From Lenisia limosa (taxonomy: Eukaryota; Protista; Breviatea), in assembly GCA_001655205.1 (NCBI GenBank), contig LPNZ01010590.1, forward strand, positions 1 through 59,301: a stretch of DNA of 59,301 bases. Direction: 5' to 3'. This document shows, in pieces, positions 1 through 46,231 of this stretch (the stretch's first letter is position 1; each line of letters opens with the position of its first letter). The translations under genes were made by a program, and so were the position numbers. The notes below the pieces were generated by a model. The model was not told the DNA's origin and ran no database searches. It worked only from the letters and a program-made list of their open reading frames with translations.

Positions 1-2605
1 GGGAGGGGGGTTAAAATGCTGTTTTTGAATCAAGGCAAAAGGGAAAGAGTCTAAGTGATACAACCCAGTCCGGCTATAGAGAAGGGGAAGAGATATCACC
101 ACAAGTAACCACAGGAACAGCTTGACATACCTCAGTGATGAGTCCCTTCATCTTGGTAGGGTTGGGGCCCTTCATGATGGATCCGAAAGCAAGGGCTGCG
201 GCCTCCCGGAGCTTCCATTCTCTGACCCGTTAGAATTTTGGTTGATTTGAAACCCAAACACATGATTGCTTCAATAAAGGGTCCTAACAGTTGGACAATT
301 GGTATTAAGCAGTCAAAAAAAAACAGGGAGGGGGGGTACTTGACCAGTTGCATACGAGTGTTGGATGTTGGCCACAACGAAAGGGGTAACAAGATCCACT
401 ATGTCATCGCCAAGGCAGCCGGCAAGGAGTGTCAGGCAAACTTGTCCGGCCATACCTGAGGCGGTCATCTCTCATTCTTTTGACATCAAAAAAGAACAGT
501 CAATATCAATATTTGCAGCGAAACAATATTCAACTTACATGAGTAAAGGAGTTCTGATAGAATCTCAGAAAAAAAACATAGCAACCATGCTCACCAGTGC
601 ACCAGCTGTCAGCGTCACAGTCCTCGTCTTGCTTGGTAAGTGTCTGGAGAATGACCGGGATGATGTGGGGTGCGCTGGCGTGGCAGAAGCGATGGTTGGT
701 CTGAGAAGGGTCTTGGGCAAGGTAGAGCTCCGCCTCGGCAAGGGTGCACCAAAATTCAATTGCCTAAATAGTGACTCCAGTAACCATTAATGAATGGTAT
801 GGATACTGTATCAGGCTTTACCTTCGATTCCAGTAGAAACTACTATTTCACCAGATACATTTTATATTCCCCTATTAATAAACATCAGTATCCTCAAGAA
901 CAGCCCGACAGCCAACCTGGTTGGCAATAACGTCATCAACATTGGCGCGCTCGATGACAGGAACTGTCAACTGGAGAGATTAGAAGAAGTAAACAATGAA
1001 GTATTCGAAAAAGCTCAGTGCGTGGTTCCTCCGTCTTAACTTTCCATTGAAAGGTTATGAAAAAGGTGTATATGTATTTGGAAAACTACCCTGCGAAATT
1101 ATCCCCAAAGGTCATTTAGATTACTCATGCAATTTTTTCAATTATTTTGAAAAATCAAAAAAAAAAGGGGGGGGGGAGAGAGAGACTGAACCACCTTAAT
1201 AATAAGATAACACTACTCCCAGCTCACGTCATAGATGGTTTTGATGTAGGGAGGAAGGATTTCATAATTGTCATCAGCAATCCGTGAGAGAATCTCGAAA
1301 GCAGTGCTAGCAATGATCTCGTCACTTGCCTAAGGAGTAAGGAGAAGCTATCATGTAATCAATTCAACCATCAGATCAGAATAGTAGACACCAACCTGAG
1401 TGGACTTGAAGATAGTAATCATAATGGCGTTGCACTCAGCCTCGACCTTGAGGTTGGAGTCAATGAAAGACAAGACTTCACGAAGGGCAGAAGTAGCCGC
1501 ACGACGCAGGGGAATGGGGTGCACTTCATCCATGGCTGTGGGAGTTACACAACGGCTCTATTCCAAAGAAGATGTCAAAAAAAGAACAGGCAGTCTCTAA
1601 TCAATTAGAGATTATTCTATGAAAACACAAAGAAATCTAGCAAACCGTAAACGAGAGCGCTGAGGACCTTGTCTGAAGTGGTCTTCTCCACAAACTGAGA
1701 GTCCAAATCCTGGCACACCATGTCTGCGATGTTACAGCTATTTTGATACTAACTTAGGTATGTTGTGACGTGAAAGTAAATAGCAGTGCTGCACCCCCAC
1801 ATCCATTCCCTCACATCCCCCACTGAGAACTTCAACAAGAGGAGGCTTGGATTCTACAGCCAGGTCTGATTGAATGCCTTGACAAAGGTTGGGGATGCAT
1901 TCGGGCCTGGGGAATAAGTGGGTGCATTCGTTGAAAAACGGTTGGAGGACTGCTGACAAGTAAAACTGCGTAATTCATTTTCTCATCCTCCTGATCACTT
2001 CTTATCCCTTGCCAAACCCAAAATAACATCCATACCCCAAATAAAAAAAGGACCACACGACCCCACTAACCATTGTCCAAATGAGATCTCAGCAACAGCA
2101 ATGGAGGCAGTGACCGCAGCAGCATAAGGACGCTCAATAGAAGCACTTAGTAGCTTGAAAAGCTTAAGATATGAGAAGGAAGATGAAAAGCAAGCGAACC
2201 TGTGTGTGAATTTGTTGACGGAGAGCAGGGTCAAGTCCCACCCATCTCTTCATCTGTGCTTGTTGCTTGTAAGCATTCTAAAAAGTCAACTGGTTTCCAT
2301 AAAGCGTTAACAAACTCTTGAAGCAATACTGTTTCTGAGGACAAGGGCTGCAGTGGCTCTGCAAGTCTCAACAGCAGTCTCGCTAAAGAGTTCCTGGGCA
2401 AGGAAGCCGACAAAGGTTGTCTTAACAGTTACTTCTACCAAACTCAAGACTAGTTCTTACGTAGTTTGACTTTTCAGCTTCAATAAGCTGTTCGGAGGCC
2501 TTGTTCCTAGTAGGCATATCTAAGGAAGAGTTAGGTCCATCATATGAATTAAATGAATAACCCACCAGGGCTTGTCGCATTTTTAAGGATCTGAGAAATG
2601 TCCAT
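1..2605 (-). CDS. KPNB1: Importin subunit beta-1 (karyopherin beta-1), multi-exon, 3' part cut off by the left window edge
   Basis: Spliced translation begins MDISQILKNATSP/DMPTRNKASEQL (ATG at 2605). Later exons: PLRRAATSALREVLSFIDSNLKVEAECNAIM, MAGQVCLTLLAGCLGDDIVDLVTPFV and EWKLREAAALAFGSIMKGP, matching importin-beta HEAT repeats. Confidence 0.93.
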
Positions 2606-2750
2606 CTTGAGATGTTCAAGAGGAGAACGGCTCTAAAAACTGCTCCAAAAAATCAATGATTTTCTCGTTAATGGCAAAGAGTTATCAACGCAGCGTTAAC
2701 ACACAGGTGTATAATAATATGTAACTTGTATGCTTGTTCACTGGCGGCCA

Positions 2751-2876
2751 AGGGGCCCACAGACCTGGGGATTTTGAAGATCCCCAGATCTCTGACAGAT
2801 CTCTAACAGATCTACAAAAATAATATCTAGATCTCCCAAAAAAATATTGGCAAAATCCCCAGATCTGTGGCCCCCT
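2751..2876. mobile_element. Short inverted-repeat element (MITE-like), rich in AGATCT
   Basis: 25-bp terminal inverted repeats with 2 mismatches (2751-2775 vs 2852-2876). The internal segment 2772-2798 recurs inverted at 47444-47470 (25/27 identical). No TSD recognised. Confidence 0.55.
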
Positions 2877-3861
2877 GACCTAGATATTTCAAGAACATGA
2901 ACTTTCAAGAATCAAAATGGCATGAAGATGGTGCTCTCTTTATTTGGTGAAACTCTATGATTTATATCCCAAGCCAATCTGATTGATGGAAGATGCGACC
3001 GCCACTACCGTTTGTCTCCGACTATATATTTATCTTAAAACATATTTAGATTTATGAAATACGAATATAAGCCACACTGCCAGTTGTATAATTTAGTAAA
3101 CGATTGGACCCAAAAAGCCCGTGCAGGTCACAGCGTCAATAAGATTGTCTTTTGACCCGCGCAATCAAGTTTTTTTCTCAATCGAGAAGCGGGAGCTTGT
3201 GGCTGGAACCTGCAAATATACTCAACAGGTCGATCCCCAAATATATTTTACTACCCCATGGCATATCCACCGGCTTGCCACTTGTGCCACCGGCCAAGCC
3301 CCACCGGCAAATATCTATTTACGGGGTTGGATATTCATAAGTTATCCAAAATTAAGGGATCATACTTTGCAAGGGTCCCAGTCCTCTCAACTAAATTTAA
3401 TAGTGAGTATTTTATTAAATAAATAATAGCAGCACACTAGAGAGGCTGAGAAAGACTTCTTGACAGGTGTCGAGGTCCCTAGATATTACTATTCTACTAC
3501 CCCATGGATAGGCCAACTTGCAAAAAAGTTATTACATGGGCCTGACATTTGTTTCCTGGGTTGTATACACCCCCCAGATTTTTGATGCATTTAAGTTCAA
3601 TCAAGTTCAAATTCCCGGGGCGCCCAGGGTCTGTTGTAAGGAAGGGACTAATTTTGAGAATATACCCGCCGGCGTCCAGGGAAAGTTCCCTCTCCATCTC
3701 CCTCTCTCTCCCTCCACCCCTCTATCTCTCGCTTGGACTATGCTTATATTATTATAGTGGGATCCCTAGCGATCCTTAACTCAGTAAAAAATCTCGCTTG
3801 CTTCTCGACACACACAGTGCTCCACCACACCAACTCCACACACTTGCATTCCTGCCCTCAA

Positions 3862-6552
3862 ATGCCCAGGGAACTAATCACTGTACAAGTTGGACAATGC
3901 GGAAACCAGGTTGGCTTTTTGACAAATAGTATGTTATTAAGGTATTCTATTGGCAAGTTGAATAACGCTCAACAGATTGGGCAACGGTTTTGGGATATGG
4001 CCCTGCAAGAGCACTCCACGCAGACCAAAAATGCTGAATTTAACGAGTCTCTTTCAACGTTTTTTCGGAATGTTGATAGCAGGTTGGGATCTTTGAGGAA
4101 GGGACTTTTAACCCTTCAATTCTGTCACCATATCTAGAACTGGAGCCACCATCCCACTTGACAACGGGAAAAGCAGAATTCGCGACCTGGAAGCAAGGGT
4201 GGGTATTCCTGTTCAAACTAACTACTTTCTTGAAGTGTAATACTCTTAGGCAGTGCTTGTAGACATGGAGGAAGGCGTGGTGCGACAGGTGTCCAACAGC
4301 AAACTTGGCTCGCTCTTCAACAACAAGTGTTTTGTGACTGGTGTTTCTGGATCTGGTAATAACTGGTTGGCTTTGGGTGGTCAATATCGTAAGTTAGGCT
4401 TGTTCACCTATGACATGTCTTGAAAAACAGTCTTTCTCTTTGGTACAATTCAAAAAAGACGGAAAGTAACATCGTAGGGCTCAAGGATACGAGGAATACG
4501 GCAATGAGTACATGGAGGAAATCTTGGACAGTGTATCCAGAGGTGAGTTGTTCTTATCCATCCACCATCAACTTTAATGCTAGTCAACCTTCTGACTATA
4601 TAGTTGCAGAAACATGTGACAGCCCTCAATCGTTTTTCGTTTTGCACTCTCTTGGTGGCGGGACCGGTTCCGGCCTTGGTGGGGTGGTGCTTCACTTTCA
4701 GTATTTATTTCAAATGTAACACTTTCAGGCTCAAAGGTTATTGAGATGCTATCTGACCAAGTTCCCGAGTTGTACCGATTTGTGGTCCCTGTGTTTCCCT
4801 CTGAAGATGATGATGTCATAACTTCGCCGTATAATTCGTATGCTGCTGTGCCTTTCACATGCTTCATCTCTGCATTTCTATCTAGAGTTGATGTTAACTT
4901 TTCAGTTTAACAGAGTTCACTGTTTAGAGTTTTATCATTGAGTCACATTCTAAGAGCAGCAGACTGTATCGTACCTCTTGACAACACCGTAGGGGGAGAG
5001 CATTTCTTCAATAGAGAATCCTGCCATCATGCCTTAGAGTTTGGCGTCTGTTGCATTGCGCGCGAGAGCAGCAGCAGCGGCCGGAGGGTTGACAAAAAAG
5101 TGCACTTCTAAGGTGACTGTGTTGAGCAATCCTCTTTTGTGTGATGAATATGTTGTACATAATATTTTTATTCTCTTCTTTTTGCTGATAACCCAGCCTT
5201 TTTCTGATATGAATGCTGTTGCAGCACAGATGCTTCTCAACCTCACCAGGTCTGTGTAAGTATTGTTTGATAAGAAGTAGGACTTTTTAAAAGCACTTCT
5301 TCAGAAATATGAAGTTTTTCTTTTTAAGACTCCTTTTTTTCTTCTATTGCAGTTTCTTACTTTTCAGTTCCATTAGATTTGAAGGTTCTCTAAATGTGGA
5401 TCTGAATGAAATTTCGTTTGTCATTGCTGAAAGACGATAACATTGATTTTAGGATGAATATGGTGCCTTTCCCTAACCTGAACCTTTTGATTCCTTCTCT
5501 AAGCCCACTTATGCTCTCCAAAGCCAAGCACCCGCAAGTTAACTCGTATGCCGCTACTTACATTAACTTCACCTTTCAGCCTCCCACAGCTTTTCAATGA
5601 CGCATTTTTACCAAATAACCAGCTCATTTCGGCTGACCCTAAGAGAGGAACGTTTGCGGAGAGTCTAGAGCTGGATTGTATCAGACGTAATTATATATTG
5701 TACTCTCATGGATTTCATTAAATTGTTTTGGAAAAGGTCACCCTTGGTCAGCTATCTGTCATGCGCGCTTCTTGTTCGAGGGCAAGGTTTTGAACTTTCA
5801 GATGTTCGTCGGAATATCGAAAAGTGGGGGGGGGATTGGCTTCTGTTCTCAACTCTTGACAGCATGCCCCTGAACTTGATTTGAGGTGACCATATAGGCT
5901 GAGACCATCGTTAACTTTCCCGGCCTGGACTGATGGATGGAAAATTGGCATGTGTAGGGTACCCCCAGTCCATTCGGTGAGAGGTGGCTCACTATCCTTT
6001 TAGAACATCTTACTTTTGTCAAACCTAAACTCTCATCTATTGACACAGTAGTCTCACAGTTTGCTCTGCCTGGCAAACAACACTTGCTTGGCAAGTACTT
6101 TGGAAACACTGCTCCAGAGGTTCAATAAACTCTATTTAAGAAAGGTCGGCCAGTCTCCCAATTTAGACGCTTTATCACAAATAACCCGTTTAGGCCCATA
6201 TTCATCACTACACTAACTTCATGAGCCCTGATGATTTTCCAGTCGCCAGAGAGGTATGCAAATATCGAATATTAAATTTTTGTATTTGTCCAGGCCGTAG
6301 CCCTGACTCCTCCCCCAGATAGTGAGGAACACGATATGCGAATACAATGACGTGGCAGCCGGCCGACCTGTGGAGGTGGGTAGAACTGCCTTCAAGTGGG
6401 ATGATGATGACCACAATAGAGCGCAACACCCAACTTCCACATCGACCCCATTTAGATGGGTACAATTCTCCATCAGCTACCTCAGCCATCTTGGCTTAAT
6501 GCAATACCTTGTTAACAGCTCTTTTAGTATCTTGGATAATAAACATGTATAA
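3862..6552 (+). CDS. TUBE1: Epsilon-tubulin, multi-exon
   Basis: MPRELITVQVGQCGNQ/IGQRFWDMALQEH...FFRNVDS; DMEEGVV; VSGSGNNW; HSLGGGTGSGLG; YRFVVPVFPSEDDDVITSPYN. These are diagnostic epsilon-tubulin segments. The stop position is approximate. Confidence 0.95.
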
Positions 6553-38930: not shown

Positions 38931-41900
38931 TTAAAGAGAAAGATTGGATTGAAGAGCAGCCATGAGGGCTTGGACTTCGGGGTCATTTTCACGACCTACT
39001 TGGTTAGGCCATTGTTGTAACTCTGAAAACCTACCCAGAGCAAGTCGCTGAATTGTTGAGACTAGTGCATCAACAGACTGCGTAATGTTTGTAGAGGCCG
39101 ACGACAACCTGGTTGTTGATAATGAAAAGGACATTGAGGCCCCTACGTATCGGAGATACTCGAAGCAGGTGTCTGTTGGACAGCTGGTTGATGACTGGCG
39201 GAAGCTGTGAGGGCAGAAGTGGCCTGATGACTGGCAGTGAATGCAGGGAAGGATGGAGTGACCTTCGATGCGGGACTCTGAGGAACAGTTACCCAAGATT
39301 GCGGGTGGCCTTGTCCGCCTTCCCGGAAGAAAACTAAGTAACGAATCTTGACCTGCTCCGTGCCATAAACCACATATTCATTTTCAGTAAAGACCTGATG
39401 GTAAAACTCAGAATCTCAGAAACCAACGGAAATTCCTTCTGGTGATCCATGAGAAGACTGATACCCGGGTCCAGCAGAGGTTAAATTGTATTGCTGAGAT
39501 TTATGTACCTTTGATTGGCCAAGCTAGAGAGGTGAGATGCAAAAAGCAATACCTTGACATCACAAATAGCAGCGACTCGTACTCCATTTCCAGCAGGATG
39601 AGCATACTACAGCATAAGGTCGTCACCGACACCCTGTTACCTTTAACGCAGTTTTGGCTTCGTTGCCGAAATAGAGTCCATGACCAAGCCATCCCATGTC
39701 TTCTGTTTTTTTGATTTTCATTTTTTTGACTGCATCAGCAGGCAGCAACAGGCCTCGAGAAAGGATACCCATCCAATTAGCCGACCCAGAGGCATGGATA
39801 AGAGGTTGGGTGTTGCCTGTGGCGCATGAGTTGAAGGGGGCAGTTTCAGTAAACCGATCAACACTGACAATGGTTTCAACCTCAATAGGTCGGTCACGGA
39901 AGAGGTCAACGAGCTAATCAAAGTCAAAAGATTAGGTTTGACCAACTGATTGGAACTCAGGGGAAGAAGGAGAAAGTGTAGTCAGGGTGCAGCAAAGGGC
40001 ATTGTATTTTGCAACAACATCATCTCCCATAAGAACAGAAGCACCACCACCAGTAGAAGACACCTAGGAATATGATGATAGACTATAAAACAAACATTCA
40101 GCATATCCGTCATCAAGTCAAGAAGGTCCATTTTCGAGTTCACATCTTCCATTGTGCGCAGCATTACGGACTACAGAAAAAAAACAATCACTTGAGAAGG
40201 AACAAATACCTTGATATTGAAGTTGCGACCAATACGATGGGGAATCGCGCTGTAAAACAGGTTGGACAGATCAATTAGCTTTGTTTCTGAGTTATTGCCG
40301 TTGATTTCCGCAATTGTTTGAATTAAGATGTCGCGACCTTCTGCCACCTGACTGAGTGAAAGAACTCCCAAAGGGGTCTCAATTCTAGAATGTTACTTTT
40401 GAACTTTCAAATTACCCTCGGGCAGTTATAGTTACATCCAAGGAAGTGGTCAACCGCTTGACTGCTTCATCAAACAAGAAGGTCACAATCTGAACGCGAT
40501 GAGAATAAAAAAAGAAAACAAACCGCAGCCTCCTTTGCAGTGATACCAGCTTCTTCCATCGTCATTATTTTAACTGGAGATGCCATGGCCTTTTCGTGTT
40601 CTGCAAAGAGCAATCTATAATCATGATTCATTATTTTCTGACAAACCTTGCGACTTCAGAACCCAGAGAACCCGAATGAAGCTCAACAACTCGGTAACCA
40701 CGACCAGTCTTCTGTCTATATAGACCCGCGTATTTGGCCTAGAGGTCAATAAATCAAACAAATGGAAAAAAAAAACCTCAGCAGCGTCACGTGATGAAAC
40801 GTATCTATTGCAACGTTGTCCAGCATCAGGGTTCTTCACCAGGTCATCTGTTCGTCCGTAATGGCAGAACACTCTGTAGTAGTCTCTTCCAAGCTCACGA
40901 CCATGATGAAGTTCACTACAGATTAGAACCATGACTTGCAACTTAAAGGGCTTACAGTACATAGTACTTGTTGTTGTTTGCATCCAGCCTTGTTTTCTGA
41001 ACGGTTAGACATAAACAAAATTAGAATTCATCAATCTTCCTCTGACCTGAAGGGTATCAGCTCTGAGAATGACGTAATGCTTTGGGAAATAAGGCTGGGA
41101 TCGATCACCCCAATTCCATGCTTTGGTGTCTCTGTCCAGTGATTTAATGGGGTTGCTAACTGGCCCGTGCAGAATGTTACGAAGAAGCTCTTTGGGATAA
41201 AAAAAAAACACATCGAATGAATGATCCTACCTCCGGAATCAACCTGTTTTTCTGAAGGGGATTTGAGAGAAGACATTGTTTTTGGAGACGGAAGAGGCTT
41301 GGATTCAACCACAGACACGGCAGGCTTCATGGAAACAACGTTTGGCAAGGAAGAAGGAAGAGGTGAGTTTGTTTTGACCGGCTCGGCAATCGTAACCTTG
41401 TCGAAAAGACGGGTAACGGTCGATTGGGGTTCGGTCGTAGGATAAGGCCGAGGGGCAGCAGGCATATTGCTGACACTTCCAGTGAAAGAAGTATCTGAAA
41501 AATGAAAAAAGAAGGGTTCATAGTTGGCTACCAGTAATGACAGCAAAGTCATGGTGCTGATGAGGGAATCCGTTAAAGCAAGCCAAACACAAATCATAGT
41601 CCTAAAAAGGGTTATTAGTAAGGAAAACCCTACTGAGCAAGTTTTGCAACGGAACCTGAGTCCCTTTATAGACATTGACCGGCACCCGTCACACATGGCA
41701 AGGCTGTGTTCACCTACCATATAAGAAAACATGACGTTATCTTACAGTCCGCGTAGTCTTCAGCTTTAGGAAATTCAGTGCATTGGGGCTCGTTGCTTTC
41801 ATTTGATACGTTAGCAGATGGTTCATTGGTTTCTGGAACAAGAGCAAACTGTTGAATAAAAGACTCCAAAGTTCGGACAAGAGAGAACGTTTCTAAAATG

Positions 41901-42826
41901 GTAAACAGCAAATGCTCAACAAGGCTAAAAAACAAAATCATTTCACGCCCCCTCAAACTGAAAGAGATATTTGCAGAAGGATCAACCGCAAAATGATTAT
42001 CGCGAGAAATGGAACCATATGACAAAGACTCGAGAAGGAAGGCAGGGTGTACCGTCTGAAAAGGTAATCGAAGTTAACTTTTCAAACATTGTGGTAGCCA
42101 AATTTAGATGCTTCGCTCTTCGTAGTAATCACATAGTCTGCCTGTATAGTTAGAAAACGTTAAAAATCCACTACTCACTTCATCCGGTCTCAAGACAACA
42201 CTGGCATTGCATCTTGAAAGGAGTTGGGGAATAACTTCGGGACCATCCAAAGGTAAATTACGGTCAACAAAGAAACTGACACCTTGCACTTCGGTTTGTT
42301 CATAAATAGTAGAAGGTATAACTAAATAATCAGTCGCAAAAATGTCACATACCATCAAGAAGCTTTGAAAGGCTCTCAAAGACGGAAGTGTCTTCTTGAG
42401 AGGACGCAGGGCTTTGGACTCTTTCAGCAGCGAATGGTTTCACTGGCTCAACAACTGCTTTACTCGTGCCAAATGTGAATGAATAAGGATTTGAAGGCTC
42501 TTCCAAAGACAAACTGACTTTTCCAAAAGAGACACTATCCATCTATAGTAGTTAGTTCAAACACCCCCTTTGGCCCATCGTACAGGGTTGAAGGAAGCAG
42601 GCACTCTTGTCTCAGCAGGGGGTTGGTAGGGCTCAGCAATGGGTCTTAACGGGTCGACAGCAGACTTGACAGCAAGTTTGCTTTTTTGAGGTAGAGGTTT
42701 GGCAGAAGAAATGTGTGTGTTTTGGAAGTTGAATAATCCAGTTGGTGTCACAGTCTTCTTTGACTTTGAAGCGGGCTTGCTCCGAGTCTTATTCTGACGT
42801 AGCGACATAAACAGGGGGTGGTTCAT
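38931..42826 (-). CDS. ZZ-finger, WGR-like, PARP-regulatory and PARP4-like catalytic domain protein (probably the C-terminal part of a fusion with the upstream NTase)
   Basis: ZZ: CDGCRSMSIKGLRFRCKTCS/DYDLCLACFNGFPHQHH. WGR-like: NNNKYYVL/ELH...YRVFCHYGRT. Regulatory: LSNLFYSAIPH, SKMDLLDLMTD. Catalytic: LIHASGSANWMGILSRGLLLP, WLGHGLYFG, PGYQSSHG, ENEYVVYGTEQVKIRYLV. Confidence 0.9.
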
Positions 42827-45107
42827 GGTGGTGGTCGGGAGCTTTCCTTCCTTTATAAGAATGTGAAAATACTGTACAAACCTGAAGTCATGTACACTCC
42901 TTCGTCAAATTCTTGCTGAACATTACAATGCCAAGCACCACTCATCAGCGTTCTGTAGAGCATAAATTTGACTCCCTGACTGCCCACCTAATTCTACCAT
43001 TATCCAAATCCTGGAGACAAGGAGGACTGAAATCCCAGGCAAGAGGCCCATACACAAATTTTGAAGCCTCATTGTCATCAGCAGGCTCTAGGTATGTGAC
43101 CATAAACACATGATAACTCACTTTCAAGAGGATGCATTTGGCTTTTGTTACAGTGCATACACCAAACAGGTCCTCCAGAGACTCCATTAATCACACCCTC
43201 AATTCCTTTGGGGTTAATAACTTATCACGTAGCCCTACCAGAAACGAAAAGATGGCGATGCCCAAAATCATCAGAAGAAAAGAACGCTGCTTTATCCTAC
43301 ATCCAGATGAACACAAATCTTTTCAACACTACCTGTTGACTCAACATCTTCATAATGGCGTTGCTGTACCAGTTGGGTCCGTATGGAATTGCAACATCGC
43401 TAATCAAATAAAAACTGTCTTAAATTCTCATCTCGATTAGGAGTAAAATTAATAAGCTGGGTATCAACTAATTTCTCATTTCTACGTTCATATTTTATCA
43501 TATGCATATCGGTCTTAATTTAGGAAAAAAAGTTACAAAAGCACAACAATTCTACAAACCAGTAATCGCTGGTGTGATGCATGAGAGAAACCTCCAACGC
43601 AGTTTCAGCAGGCCTACAGAAATATAAGTCGTCCTATATGTCAAGACACTAACATTCCAACGGAGAAACCAGGCCGATGACATGTGGCTTCACGTCGTCG
43701 AAGGGCAAAGTACTCAAAGAGCAAAAGCCGCTTCAAACCCTTGACAAACGAAACATTCGGACGATGGAAGATATCAGGATTGACGCGTTTTTTGTCAAGA
43801 CTTGGATAGTTGACTTGGAATCCTAAATACATAAGCATGGGAGCCTGTCGGACCTCTTGTTGCGTATTTTCTAAGACGAGATTCGTAAGTAGTTGATCGT
43901 CTCGAAGGGTCAATCAAAATATATCTGAAAGGTGAATGCCTTCACAAGATCAAACCCTTTTGTAACAGCTCTCTTGAATCGCTCCATTGCCCAAACTGTG
44001 GTTCCATCAAAGCCCACGGAACAGGCTCCATTATCGAATCCAAGAAGAACCTGAAAGTAAAGTTTAAAGGAGTAGCAGCTACCTCTGCAGGAGATTTGTA
44101 CGCTCTCAGAATGATCTGAAGATGGCGTGCTGGGTATGGTGCAATAATAGTCACTGCACGAGAAGTCCTAATAACATCCAAAGTCTAAAAAGTTATCACT
44201 ATTATTTGGAGGGGGGGGGGGGGGTTAAAAAAAANNNNNNNNNNNNNNNNNNNNNNNNNNNNNNNNNNNNNNNNNNNNNNNNNNNNNNNNNNNNNNNNNN
44301 NNNNTTCCAGACGCTTTACAAAATGAATCATAAATTTCTTGGACTTTTTGATTGAGATCGGCAACTGAGTCCAAGCCATAGAGGAAGATGTCAAGATCAC
44401 CAGGAGTTGAACCTTGTTGGACGTTTTGAACACAGTCTAATGGTCAACAAAATCCTTACACATACAATGAATCGCTCCACCAGCCAAGAAGACGTTGGAC
44501 CAATCAAGCTGTTCAAGGAATTTTTGGGTCATGGAATCAAAGCTAGATTGTGAAAAAAACTGAATAAAGAACTCCAACAGACTTTGCCTACCGCTCATCA
44601 AACTGCTGTTTGGTCACAATTGCTGGACCATTTCGAAACTTCCTCCTGTGATATTGGAACAGGGCAGGTTGTGCAGCCTAGGGGTAAGCAAAAAAACAAA
44701 AACTAAGAGCAAACTTCATCGTCATCCATTTCTTCCAGTTGCCATTGTTGCTCAGAAAATACATCTGTGAGGAGAACATGGGGATCCTATCATTATTAAT
44801 GGCTATCAAATAATTCACTATGAAGCTCTCCAAATAAAACAGGCTAAACTTCTTTTATGTAACTTAAATGCGACCTAGTATACGGTCCTGATCTACCGAC
44901 AAACTGATGTTTTATACGAAGTATTCTGGGACGCAAATTCTTCTCTGAGATCTTTTTCTTCATTTAAGAGTCTCAGCTGCTCTTGCCTACAATATTAGCA
45001 ATTTCATCTTGATAGAAGACACTGATAAATGGTGATGGAACTTACGTATAATCCGTCGATTCTGGAAACTCTTGTTCAGTTTTGCAGGTATCAATCATTT
45101 CTCTCAT
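42789..45107 (-). CDS. Pol-beta-superfamily nucleotidyltransferase-domain protein (the family often labelled 'ankyrin repeat protein' in fungi and giant viruses, by recollection)
   Basis: LDWSNVFLAGGAI, GDLDIFLYGL, RTSRAVTI...RHLQIILRAYKSPAE/VLLGFD, DPSRRSTTYESRLRKYATR/GFQV, GLKRLLLFE, IPYGPNW. The hGG...DhD signature is present. The start codon is tentative. Confidence 0.8.
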
Positions 45108-45405
45108 TTTTTAGGTAAGTCGTAAAGAAAAGAGCAAGTTGACAGCACTATCGCAATGCGCCGCGGAAATTACTTTTTTTTAAGCTCTTAACGATACACA
45201 AAAACTCAAAAAATCAAAAAACAGGGGTTCAAGGATGTAGTAGGCTTAAACGCTTTAAACGCGCGTTTTTTTTTGCAGGTTTTGTGGTGTAAGAATTATG
45301 TAATCAGTGTAAAATCGTAAATTAATTGGATGACTGCAGTTCAGTTCACTCCTTTTTGCAGTGTCTTTTTTTTTTTATATCTTCCTCTACGACGAAAAGT
45401 CCGAA

Positions 45406-46231
45406 ATGAAGTTAGTCCCATTGAAGCTAATTAGACGTTTTCTTACATATTAGGGTTGAAACTTGCTCATTCTCTGGTCTCAAGATCCACCCCGGTCGCG
45501 GAAAGCAATTCGCTCGCTTTGATGGACGTGTATGTTGTCTATTTTAAATATTACTGCGTGTTTGAGCGATCCTAATTTGTTATAGACCTTCGTTCTCCTG
45601 AACCGCAAGGTCCAGGCTCTCTTCACCCAGCGTCGCAACCCCCGCAAGACTGACTGGACTGTCGTATGTTGGGCGAAATTATGTCTCATTTTTGACGATG
45701 ATGAGATTTTTTAATCATTTCAAACCATTGATTAACCCGTGATTGTTATACCTACATTATCGAAGTTACTTTTTTTTTGCTTTTCTCAGAAAGTCCATAA
45801 TTTCTCTAATTTTCAGGTCTACCGTCGCATGCACCGCAAGGGTATTCAAGAAGCTGCCTCTAAGAGACGTACTCGGTTTGTTGGGGACTTCTTACACCTT
45901 TCTTCTTAGGATGAATGTAAACACAAACAGTTATCCCTATCTTAGCTTTCAACGAGCTGACACAAACCGTTCATGACTAAACACTTTGATGTGTCAGGAA
46001 TCAAGTATTTCTCTACTGATACTGTTCAGCAAGTCTGCCAAGGCCACCCGTGGTATTGGTGGAATGACTCGCGAGGAGCTCCTCCAGAAGAAGAACGAGA
46101 AGCCCGAGGTTCGTGCTGCCAACCGGGATGCTGCCATTCGTGCCATCAAGGAGAAGAAGCGTGCTGAGGCTGCTGCTGCCGCTGCTGCTAAGCCCGCCAA
46201 GAAGGCTACCAAGGGCAAGGGCAAGAAGTAA
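45406..46231 (+). CDS. RPL24: 60S ribosomal protein L24 (eL24)
   Basis: [19 protein letters not shown]; [16 protein letters not shown]; [37 protein letters not shown]. Confidence 0.97.
45908..45976 (+). ncRNA. Box C/D snoRNA, snR38/SNORD1-like, intronic in RPL24
   Basis: C-like box AGGATGA; guide CAGTTATCCCT (45928-45938) complementary to conserved LSU rRNA AGGGAUAACUG; D'-like CTTA; terminal CTGA/ATGA boxes. Confidence 0.7.

Follow-up and report, generated by a model that had tools for sequence, protein, structure and literature searches.

The window analysed here is a stretch of 59,301 nt from the breviate protist Lenisia limosa (contig LPNZ01010590.1 of assembly GCA_001655205.1), an intron-rich eukaryotic sequence with small introns. 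The subject of this work is a gene on its minus strand in which a predicted nucleotidyltransferase (NTase) domain related to the phage protein Gad2 precedes a ZZ-type zinc finger and a PARP4-type poly(ADP-ribose) polymerase (PARP) module. The gene is expressed as one message, and it is an order-swapped, ZZ-bearing breviate variant of a fusion family that already exists in public sequence data, widespread but undescribed.

Gene structure and expression

Transcript evidence for the locus comes from the sole RNA run that holds the interval 39120-45115, a polyA, metatranscriptomic run of 2016. The RNA contig (4,362 nt, depth 34) follows the minus strand from upstream of 45115 to 39231, and its comparison with the genome yields 35 joints and two 29-nt deletions. 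Fifteen of the joints are read directly, three further introns are seen as ends of contig pieces or as short deletions, and all of these obey the GT..AG rule and span 29-50 nt. The other 20 of the 35 joints were rebuilt by dynamic programming, under the constraints that introns be of the GT..AG type, that no in-frame stop arise, that the mRNA measure exactly the required length from one anchor to the next, and that the amount of exon sequence in every 200-nt depth bin be reproduced. The anchors tie the genome to the contig at 44305-44542 (contig positions 439-647), 42584-42845 (1522-1783), 42353-42542 (1784-1973), 41231-41494 (2565-2828), 40210-40384 (3409-3583), 39641-39913 (3776-4048) and 39231-39392 (4201-4362). 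Codons start at contig positions equal to 2 modulo 3 in every anchor, and hence a single frame of one assembled message runs through the NTase region, the linker and the PARP region.

The rebuilt model has 38 exons and a stop-free coding sequence (CDS) of 4,311 nt, in which contig position equals CDS position plus 136 throughout, the last anchor included. The inferred exons between 43613 and 42882 are independently supported, since their translation contains residues conserved across the family and can be aligned continuously with P0083, a homologous protein described below; the borders of inferred exons are uncertain at a few places (42847-43340 and 42178/42174). The locus is therefore one gene with one message, as the initial annotation had proposed, and the single RNA contig bears this out with one frame and an even depth across the NTase and PARP halves. 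A merger of two genes by the assembler was also considered, and was rejected on the basis of the single-frame RNA contig that runs across the locus.

In the minimal model, the coding region extends from 45107 to 39143 and comprises 1,437 codons interrupted by 37 introns of 29-160 nt. The start ATG occupies 45107-45105, an in-frame TAA lies two codons upstream (45113-45111), and the contig carries a 5' leader of 136 nt. The TAG that ends the minimal model (39145-39143) overlaps a good donor site (AC/GTAGGG...CCAG, 38 nt), which allows for an alternative 3' end between 39146 and 38931, where a candidate terminal intron (39146-39109, 38 nt, GTAGGG..CCAG) would be followed by further coding sequence and a stop at 38933-38931, the end given in the initial annotation. 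The stretch downstream of this candidate intron is an open frame and is not of low complexity; the RNA contig ends before it, at 39231. We put the size of the protein at about 1,440-1,500 aa, and at least at 1,437 aa.

A ZZ finger and a PARP4-type module in the C-terminal half

From its N-terminus, the protein is ordered as NTase, linker, ZZ, WGR, PARP_reg and PARP catalytic (ART) domain, an arrangement that had been put forward on inspection and that the rebuilt 38-exon model and the domain matches uphold. The landmarks on which that reading leaned (GG, DLD, SRRSTTYESRLRKY, ZZ, HYGR and the H-Y-E triad) were each recovered at the positions given for them. The low-complexity linker (aa 471-612; 42354-42820, minus strand, as are all features of the gene) is rich in Lys, Ser and Pro, and its two exons are directly present in the RNA contig pieces 42584-42845 and 42353-42542. 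It is followed by a region (aa 618-705; 41975-42307) whose resemblance to a BRCT domain is visual and unconfirmed.

The ZZ finger (aa 762-806; 41542-41708) is split by a 32-nt intron, and the two exons match complementary halves of PF00569, positions 2-26 with 19.4 bits and positions 27-41 with 18.8 bits, so that the half scores sum to 38 bits against a cut-off of 21.4 bits. The finger opens with CDGC, which begins at 41693. The WGR domain (aa 935-1026; 40676-41079), in which YGR replaces WGR, gives no Pfam WGR match on single exons. It is detected with an E-value of 8e-35 by a local hidden Markov model (HMM) built from the Pfam-verified WGR regions of five homologues, for which 999 shuffled copies all yield E > 1. 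The consensus of this HMM likewise reads YGR for WGR, and the HYGR that had suggested a WGR domain in the first place lies at about 40863-40852. Downstream, the PARP helical regulatory domain (HD, or PARP_reg; 39986-40480) is recognized through PF02877, which the exon 40210-40383 matches with E 4.5e-10 and 40.2 bits against a cut-off of 26.8 bits.

The ART domain (39302-39913) matches PF00644 on two exons, and its triad is intact, with H1253 at 39796-39794, Y1294 at 39673-39671 and E1360 at 39379-39377. Among solved structures, the 91-aa catalytic exon 39641-39913 matches PARP4 alone (E 5e-11), in agreement with the PARP4-like character that had been ascribed to it, and the WGR-HD-ART part of P0083 is likewise closer to PARP4 (1e-46) than to PARP1 (5e-28) by the same standard. 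The N-terminal part of human PARP4 (vault PARP) is organized as BRCT-WGR-HD-ART (PMC10450202). Human PARP4 and the Lenisia protein thus share the order WGR-HD-ART and the H-Y-E triad, in addition to human PARP4 being the nearest solved structure by sequence. On the other hand, the Lenisia protein ends soon after the ART domain and is devoid of the VIT-vWA (ITIH-like) and vault-binding, MVP-interacting regions of animal PARP4, with no BRCT domain detected either, whereas human PARP4 has neither the ZZ finger nor the 470-aa NTase domain. Judged by these sequence matches, the C-terminal half is a ZZ finger plus a PARP4-type (clade 5) WGR-HD-ART module, PARP4-like in its catalytic core only.

The N-terminal domain and the Gad2 family

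The N-terminal domain spans aa 21-470 (42821-45047), with an NTase core at about aa 98-300 (43704-44602). Local searches of the domain against Pfam, NCBIfam and PDB sequences gave no match, and the local Pfam search gave no PF26128 match even on its relatives; an exhaustive HMMER search with the 55-aa NTase exon returned only two repeat-junk proteins. As a mere lead, a 43-aa piece with the DLD motif resembles Gad2 and PolyA_pol clusters by language-model (ESM) features. A degenerate DNA pattern for the motif YE.RL.KY..RGF found 26 viral loci, nearly all of them in giant viruses, and the spliced window protein matches those giant-virus loci with E-values of up to 3e-43 in local tblastn, and P0083 with 4e-113 in local blastp. 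The database searches were run with two queries, P0083 and L022, the latter an intron-less viral open reading frame (ORF) of 1,544 aa that combines the N-domain with ankyrin repeats.

These searches uncovered more than 200 proteins with the N-domain, distributed over fungi, Amoebozoa, Anaeramoeba, Blastocystis, Naegleria, algae and giant viruses, most of which are named 'ankyrin repeat protein'. Their precomputed Pfam label is nearly always PF26128 (Gad2), which is assigned to P0083 as well at E <= 1e-5, and there is a weak match (E 1e-4) to PHROG 1614, 'nucleotidyltransferase'. The relatives of the window gene thus share a Pfam family with phage Gad2 (Gabija anti-defence 2), and an NTase fold is predicted for both, although Gad2 differs in being a stand-alone protein of ~400 aa. 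The ankyrin proteins of giant viruses and fungi, such as the Fadolivirus protein and L022 (ORF 1274-5908), carry the same N-domain (E 6e-40 to the window protein; Foldseek E 2e-34 for the Fadolivirus protein) joined to ankyrin repeats and with no PARP; the NTase tree places them on its other main branch. Among the BFVD matches, Pandoravirus, Pithovirus-like viruses and Klosneuvirinae encode the NTase fold many times per genome, in combination with BTB, VWFA, F-box and RING domains.

The fold was assessed on an AlphaFold model of P0083 residues 11-474, computed with 55 aligned homologues (predicted local distance difference test score, pLDDT, 83; predicted TM-score, pTM, 0.86). Foldseek matches this model to class II CCA-, CC- and A-adding enzymes and to Escherichia coli poly(A) polymerase I (PAP I) with probability 1.0. 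VIA-align gives Z-scores of 10.3-8 to class II tRNA nucleotidyltransferases and PAP I (10.3 for CC/A-adding enzymes, 8.9 for PAP I), with a root-mean-square deviation of 3-4 A over 160-185 residues. Weaker matches include TENT5 (Z 7.9), DncV (Z 3.5) and Pol beta (Z 3.3), and the TM-score of CdnE against the P0083 model is 0.14-0.17. The class II enzymes are the best structural match over head and neck, and their GG and DxD motifs fall in the same places; nonetheless, identity is only 10-14%, no Pfam PolyA_pol match is obtained, and the C-terminal 170 aa of the N-domain are unrelated to them. The modelled structure thus supports the NTase fold initially assigned to the N-terminus, in the form of a divergent class-II-type, template-independent nucleotidyltransferase fold for the family as a whole. 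Within this comparison, the nearest kind would be a template-independent 3'-end polymerase, and not a cyclic-nucleotide synthase, CD-NTase, cGAS and OAS not being the closest fold.

A recurrent fusion of the NTase with one PARP clade

A main result of our local searches is that 33 non-redundant public proteins join a Gad2-like NTase to the same PARP clade. They stem mostly from Amoebozoa (Heterostelium, Acytostelium, Tieghemostelium, Physarum, Pelomyxa, Arcella, Pyxidicula and Vermamoeba among them), and the other sources include a cercozoan (Apiculatamorpha), a haptophyte and a ciliate transcriptome. In these fusions, the PARP precedes the NTase and ankyrin repeats usually follow. The amoebozoan representatives, among them Heterostelium PPL_05938 (P0155), Tieghemostelium DLAC_09816 (P0137), Arcella A0A6B2KWG6 (P0133) and the Vermamoeba protein (P0076), read BRCT-WGR-HD-ART and then NTase. 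The window gene departs from them in placing the NTase first, in having a ZZ finger and no ankyrin repeats, and in the loss of two near-invariant NTase residues.

The sole exception to the PARP-first order is P0083, a complete ORF of 1,393 aa from an independent transcript contig (run SRR22100205), which is co-linear with the window protein as NTase-linker-WGR-HD-ART at 43% and 41% identity. Unlike the window protein, P0083 lacks a ZZ finger, contains two BRCT domains confirmed by Pfam, and keeps the Asp and the Asn that are missing from the window protein.

The notion, advanced in the initial annotation, that no NTase-PARP combination was known is thus superseded by at least 33 public fusions, and precomputed Pfam already lists PF26128 and PF00644 together on the fusion proteins. 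Our literature searches found no paper describing the combination. Perina et al. (PMC4245714) report that there are PARP4-like proteins which lack VIT/vWA and that clade 5 has expanded in Amoebozoa, and name no NTase domain. In two chytrid proteins of ~795 aa (P0151 and P0154), a kinase and a Gad2-like domain are the only domains, yet both bear the NCBI name 'Protein mono-ADP-ribosyltransferase parp4', a name that was probably transferred from amoebozoan PARP4-like proteins by way of their NTase domain.

In a tree of the PARP modules, 40 sequences fall into one clade with 100% support, apart from those of the PARP1/2 type, and 33 of the 40 are fused to the NTase. The remaining seven are joined to an ATP-dependent DNA ligase (four), an RNA ligase (one) or WWE (one), or have BRCT alone (one). 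The ligase proteins P0218-P0221 are ~930 aa long and couple the ATP-dependent DNA ligase to the WGR-HD-ART of this clade; one of them is filed under an Acidobacteria metagenome bin and may be a mis-binned eukaryotic or viral contig. P0080, an Apiculatamorpha protein of about 2,000 aa, adds a complete polynucleotide kinase/3'-phosphatase (PNK3P plus kinase) to BRCT-WGR-HD-ART and NTase, and so brings three end-processing activities together on one chain. P0150, from ENA, combines PARP, NTase and a kinase domain (PF13671), with no phosphatase domain listed. Elsewhere, the partners of the NTase family include BRCT, PBZ, WWE, HMG, histone-fold and Alba domains.

The window gene and P0083 are sisters in the PARP tree (support 92). 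In the NTase tree, both group with 13 stand-alone proteins of ~800 aa (support 98%), and the NTases of the PARP-first fusions lie outside this clade. The starred branches of the NTase tree force at least three changes of fusion state, but given that the trees are quick ones and that the window gene has long branches, we claim no number of fusion events. Taken as a whole, the window gene is an order-swapped variant, specific in its ZZ finger and its breviate host, of an existing, widespread but undescribed fusion family.

Active-site residues of the Lenisia copy

The hG[GS] motif, A121-G122-G123 at the end of strand 1 (44476-44484, with the GG codons at 44481-44476), is invariant in the family alignment, and the predicted metal-binding DxD motif, D140-L-D142 (44390-44398), has Asp at both positions in 192 of 192 homologues. 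In the P0083 model, these motifs map to the strand-to-helix junction at residues 105-110 and to the strand at residues 127-132. The SRRSTTYESRLRKY motif lies at 43905-43864, and D211, R245-R246-S247, Y250-E251, R253 and K256-Y257 are kept too.

The set of family-invariant residues is nonetheless incomplete, for 19 of the 21 columns checked are kept and two deviate. At D211-N-G213 (44027-44035), where the family has D-V-D, the second Asp (D in 190/192 homologues, N in 2/192) is here a Gly, and Ile239 (43918-43920) takes the place of an Asn found in 190/192. Both codons lie inside exons, D211-N-G213 in a single one, and the RNA agrees with the genome. Judging from the class II motifs and the order of secondary structure, these two positions would lie near motif B and the nucleotide-binding region. 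The early recognition of the NTase motifs thus holds for GG and DLD, which are present, and falls short in having overlooked these two replacements. Going by sequence, the NTase of the Lenisia copy may be impaired or changed.

Assembly gap, tandem acceptors and neighbouring sequence

An N run of the assembly (44235-44304) falls within the NTase region, inside an intron at 44185-44304 that is defined by an RNA joint from 44305 to 44184. Between these two positions, the RNA contig has two letters, AA on the coding strand (TT on the plus strand), and the frame is kept. The joint and its two letters imply that the N run is intronic save for two bases that belong to the exon. According to a DNA contig of the same study, which reads through the gap, it is 23 nt shorter than written. 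A break of the frame by the gap was entertained and rejected, the RNA contig continuing the frame across it. A homopolymer stretch of 8 T and some 13 C adjoins the gap (44205-44234) and probably caused it; the same-study DNA contig differs from the window at 44224 and 44226.

A second intron of interest, 35 nt long (42847-42881), has tandem acceptors, with AG ending at 42851 and at 42847, and the RNA contig takes the distal, frame-keeping one. The proximal acceptor (42851) would shift the frame and lead to a stop after 20 codons. No use of it is seen in the assembled RNA contig, although contigs could miss a minor form.

Beyond the gene, an ORF on the plus strand (45986-46231) has a Lys/Ala/Arg-rich tail that resembles the C-terminus of ribosomal protein L24e, and would lie next to the PARP gene on its upstream side, in divergent orientation.

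A proposed break-activated PARP with a tethered end-processing enzyme

The domain partners of the PARP clade (ligases, PNKP and the NTase itself), together with those of the NTase family, suggest a role at the ends of nucleic acids and in ADP-ribose signalling. Starting from the demonstrated single message, domain identities, family fold and recurrence of the fusion, we propose, with a probability of roughly 60%, that the window gene encodes a break-activated PARP4-type enzyme with a Gad2-like 3'-end nucleotidyltransferase in cis, as one gene of a widespread fusion family. In this proposal, the WGR/HD module would sense a nucleic-acid end or break, and such sensing would release the autoinhibition of the ART domain, as it does in PARP1-3. 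ADP-ribosylation could then mark the site or the protein itself, and the tethered NTase would act on the same substrate, most likely by nucleotide addition to the 3'-OH of RNA or DNA. Break sensing, the substrate of the NTase and catalysis by the Lenisia copy are the parts of this scheme that we infer.

Several observations weigh against the proposal. The evidence for the fold comes from the homologue P0083, which is 43% identical to the window protein, a profile comparison of the N-domain with E. coli PAP I in hhalign gave nothing, and a tblastn search of phage genomes found no match to the N-domain. Phage Gad2 is itself a predicted NTase only, which defeats Gabija by an unexplained route, and our literature searches found no biochemical activity for any member of the Gad2-like NTase family. 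On the PARP side, BRCT is present in most relatives of the window protein and was not detected in the protein itself, either as a Pfam match on its exons or with two local BRCT HMMs built from homologues. Giant viruses hold a greatly expanded set of family members, joined to ankyrin, BTB and F-box domains, and this fits a role in conflict as well as one in repair. A further reservation concerns the Lenisia copy as such, for its loss of both near-invariant NTase residues is unique among the 192 homologues, and its branches are long in the NTase tree (1.16) and in the PARP tree (1.63) alike.

This last pair of observations is what gives substance to the alternative that the NTase of the Lenisia copy is a pseudoenzyme, retained as a nucleotide- or nucleic-acid-binding (targeting) module for the PARP, while its relatives could be active. 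However, GG, the DxD Asps, D211, RRS, YE and the R/K of the following helix are all kept, which is unusual for a decaying active site, and we regard a pseudoenzyme as possible but doubtful.

The initial annotation had put forward a sensor with a second messenger, that is, an immune sensor-effector in which an NTase of the cGAS/OAS/CD-NTase kind makes a messenger or adds tails to foreign nucleic acid, while the PARP serves as antiviral effector. A role in immunity or conflict is possible given the giant-virus expansion. A phage anti-defence protein is a relative of the family, CD-NTases do appear among the weaker fold matches, and the rapid evolution reported for PARP4 in primates suggests host-virus conflict (PMC10450202). 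The fold comparison nevertheless makes the messenger reading the weaker one, as the Z-score of CD-NTases is 3.5, compared with 8-10 for CCA-adding enzymes and PAP I. The partners found in the PARP clade, moreover, are end-repair enzymes (DNA ligase, RNA ligase and PNKP) and ADP-ribose readers instead of typical immune effectors, and the protein has no messenger receptor. We thus consider the immune sensor-effector unlikely.

More speculative still, and in our estimation improbable, is the idea that the Gad2-like NTase family acts on poly(ADP-ribose) or on ADP-ribosylated nucleic-acid ends, for instance by nucleotide capping or extension, which would place a writer and a modifier of the same mark on one chain. 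If true, this would explain why PARP4-like fusions recur, in both orders, why the family is joined to the PAR readers WWE and PBZ and, possibly, how Gad2 disarms Gabija, and it would endow the enigmatic PARP4 clade with an ancestral function. Finally, that the main product is an NTase-only protein made through the proximal acceptor (intron 42881-42851), or that an internal start yields a separate PARP, with the fusion as a minor form, is very improbable, for although tandem AGs exist and assembled contigs drop rare variants, the sole RNA contig takes the frame-keeping acceptor with even depth over both halves, the co-linear P0083 is one complete ORF, and 33 other fusions exist.

The window gene is not unique, and its NTase may be altered. 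Among the DNA-break-type PARPs, PARP4 is the one least understood, and the anti-defence protein Gad2 has no known mechanism. Tractable organisms, such as dictyostelids and Physarum, carry the fusion. The PARP4-like clade described here is almost defined by its fusion to a Gad2-like NTase (33 of 40), and this provides a concrete and testable link between ADP-ribosylation and nucleic-acid end processing. With the Lenisia gene, another eukaryotic lineage is seen to have a second version of the fusion, in swapped order, which makes the case for a functional coupling stronger.

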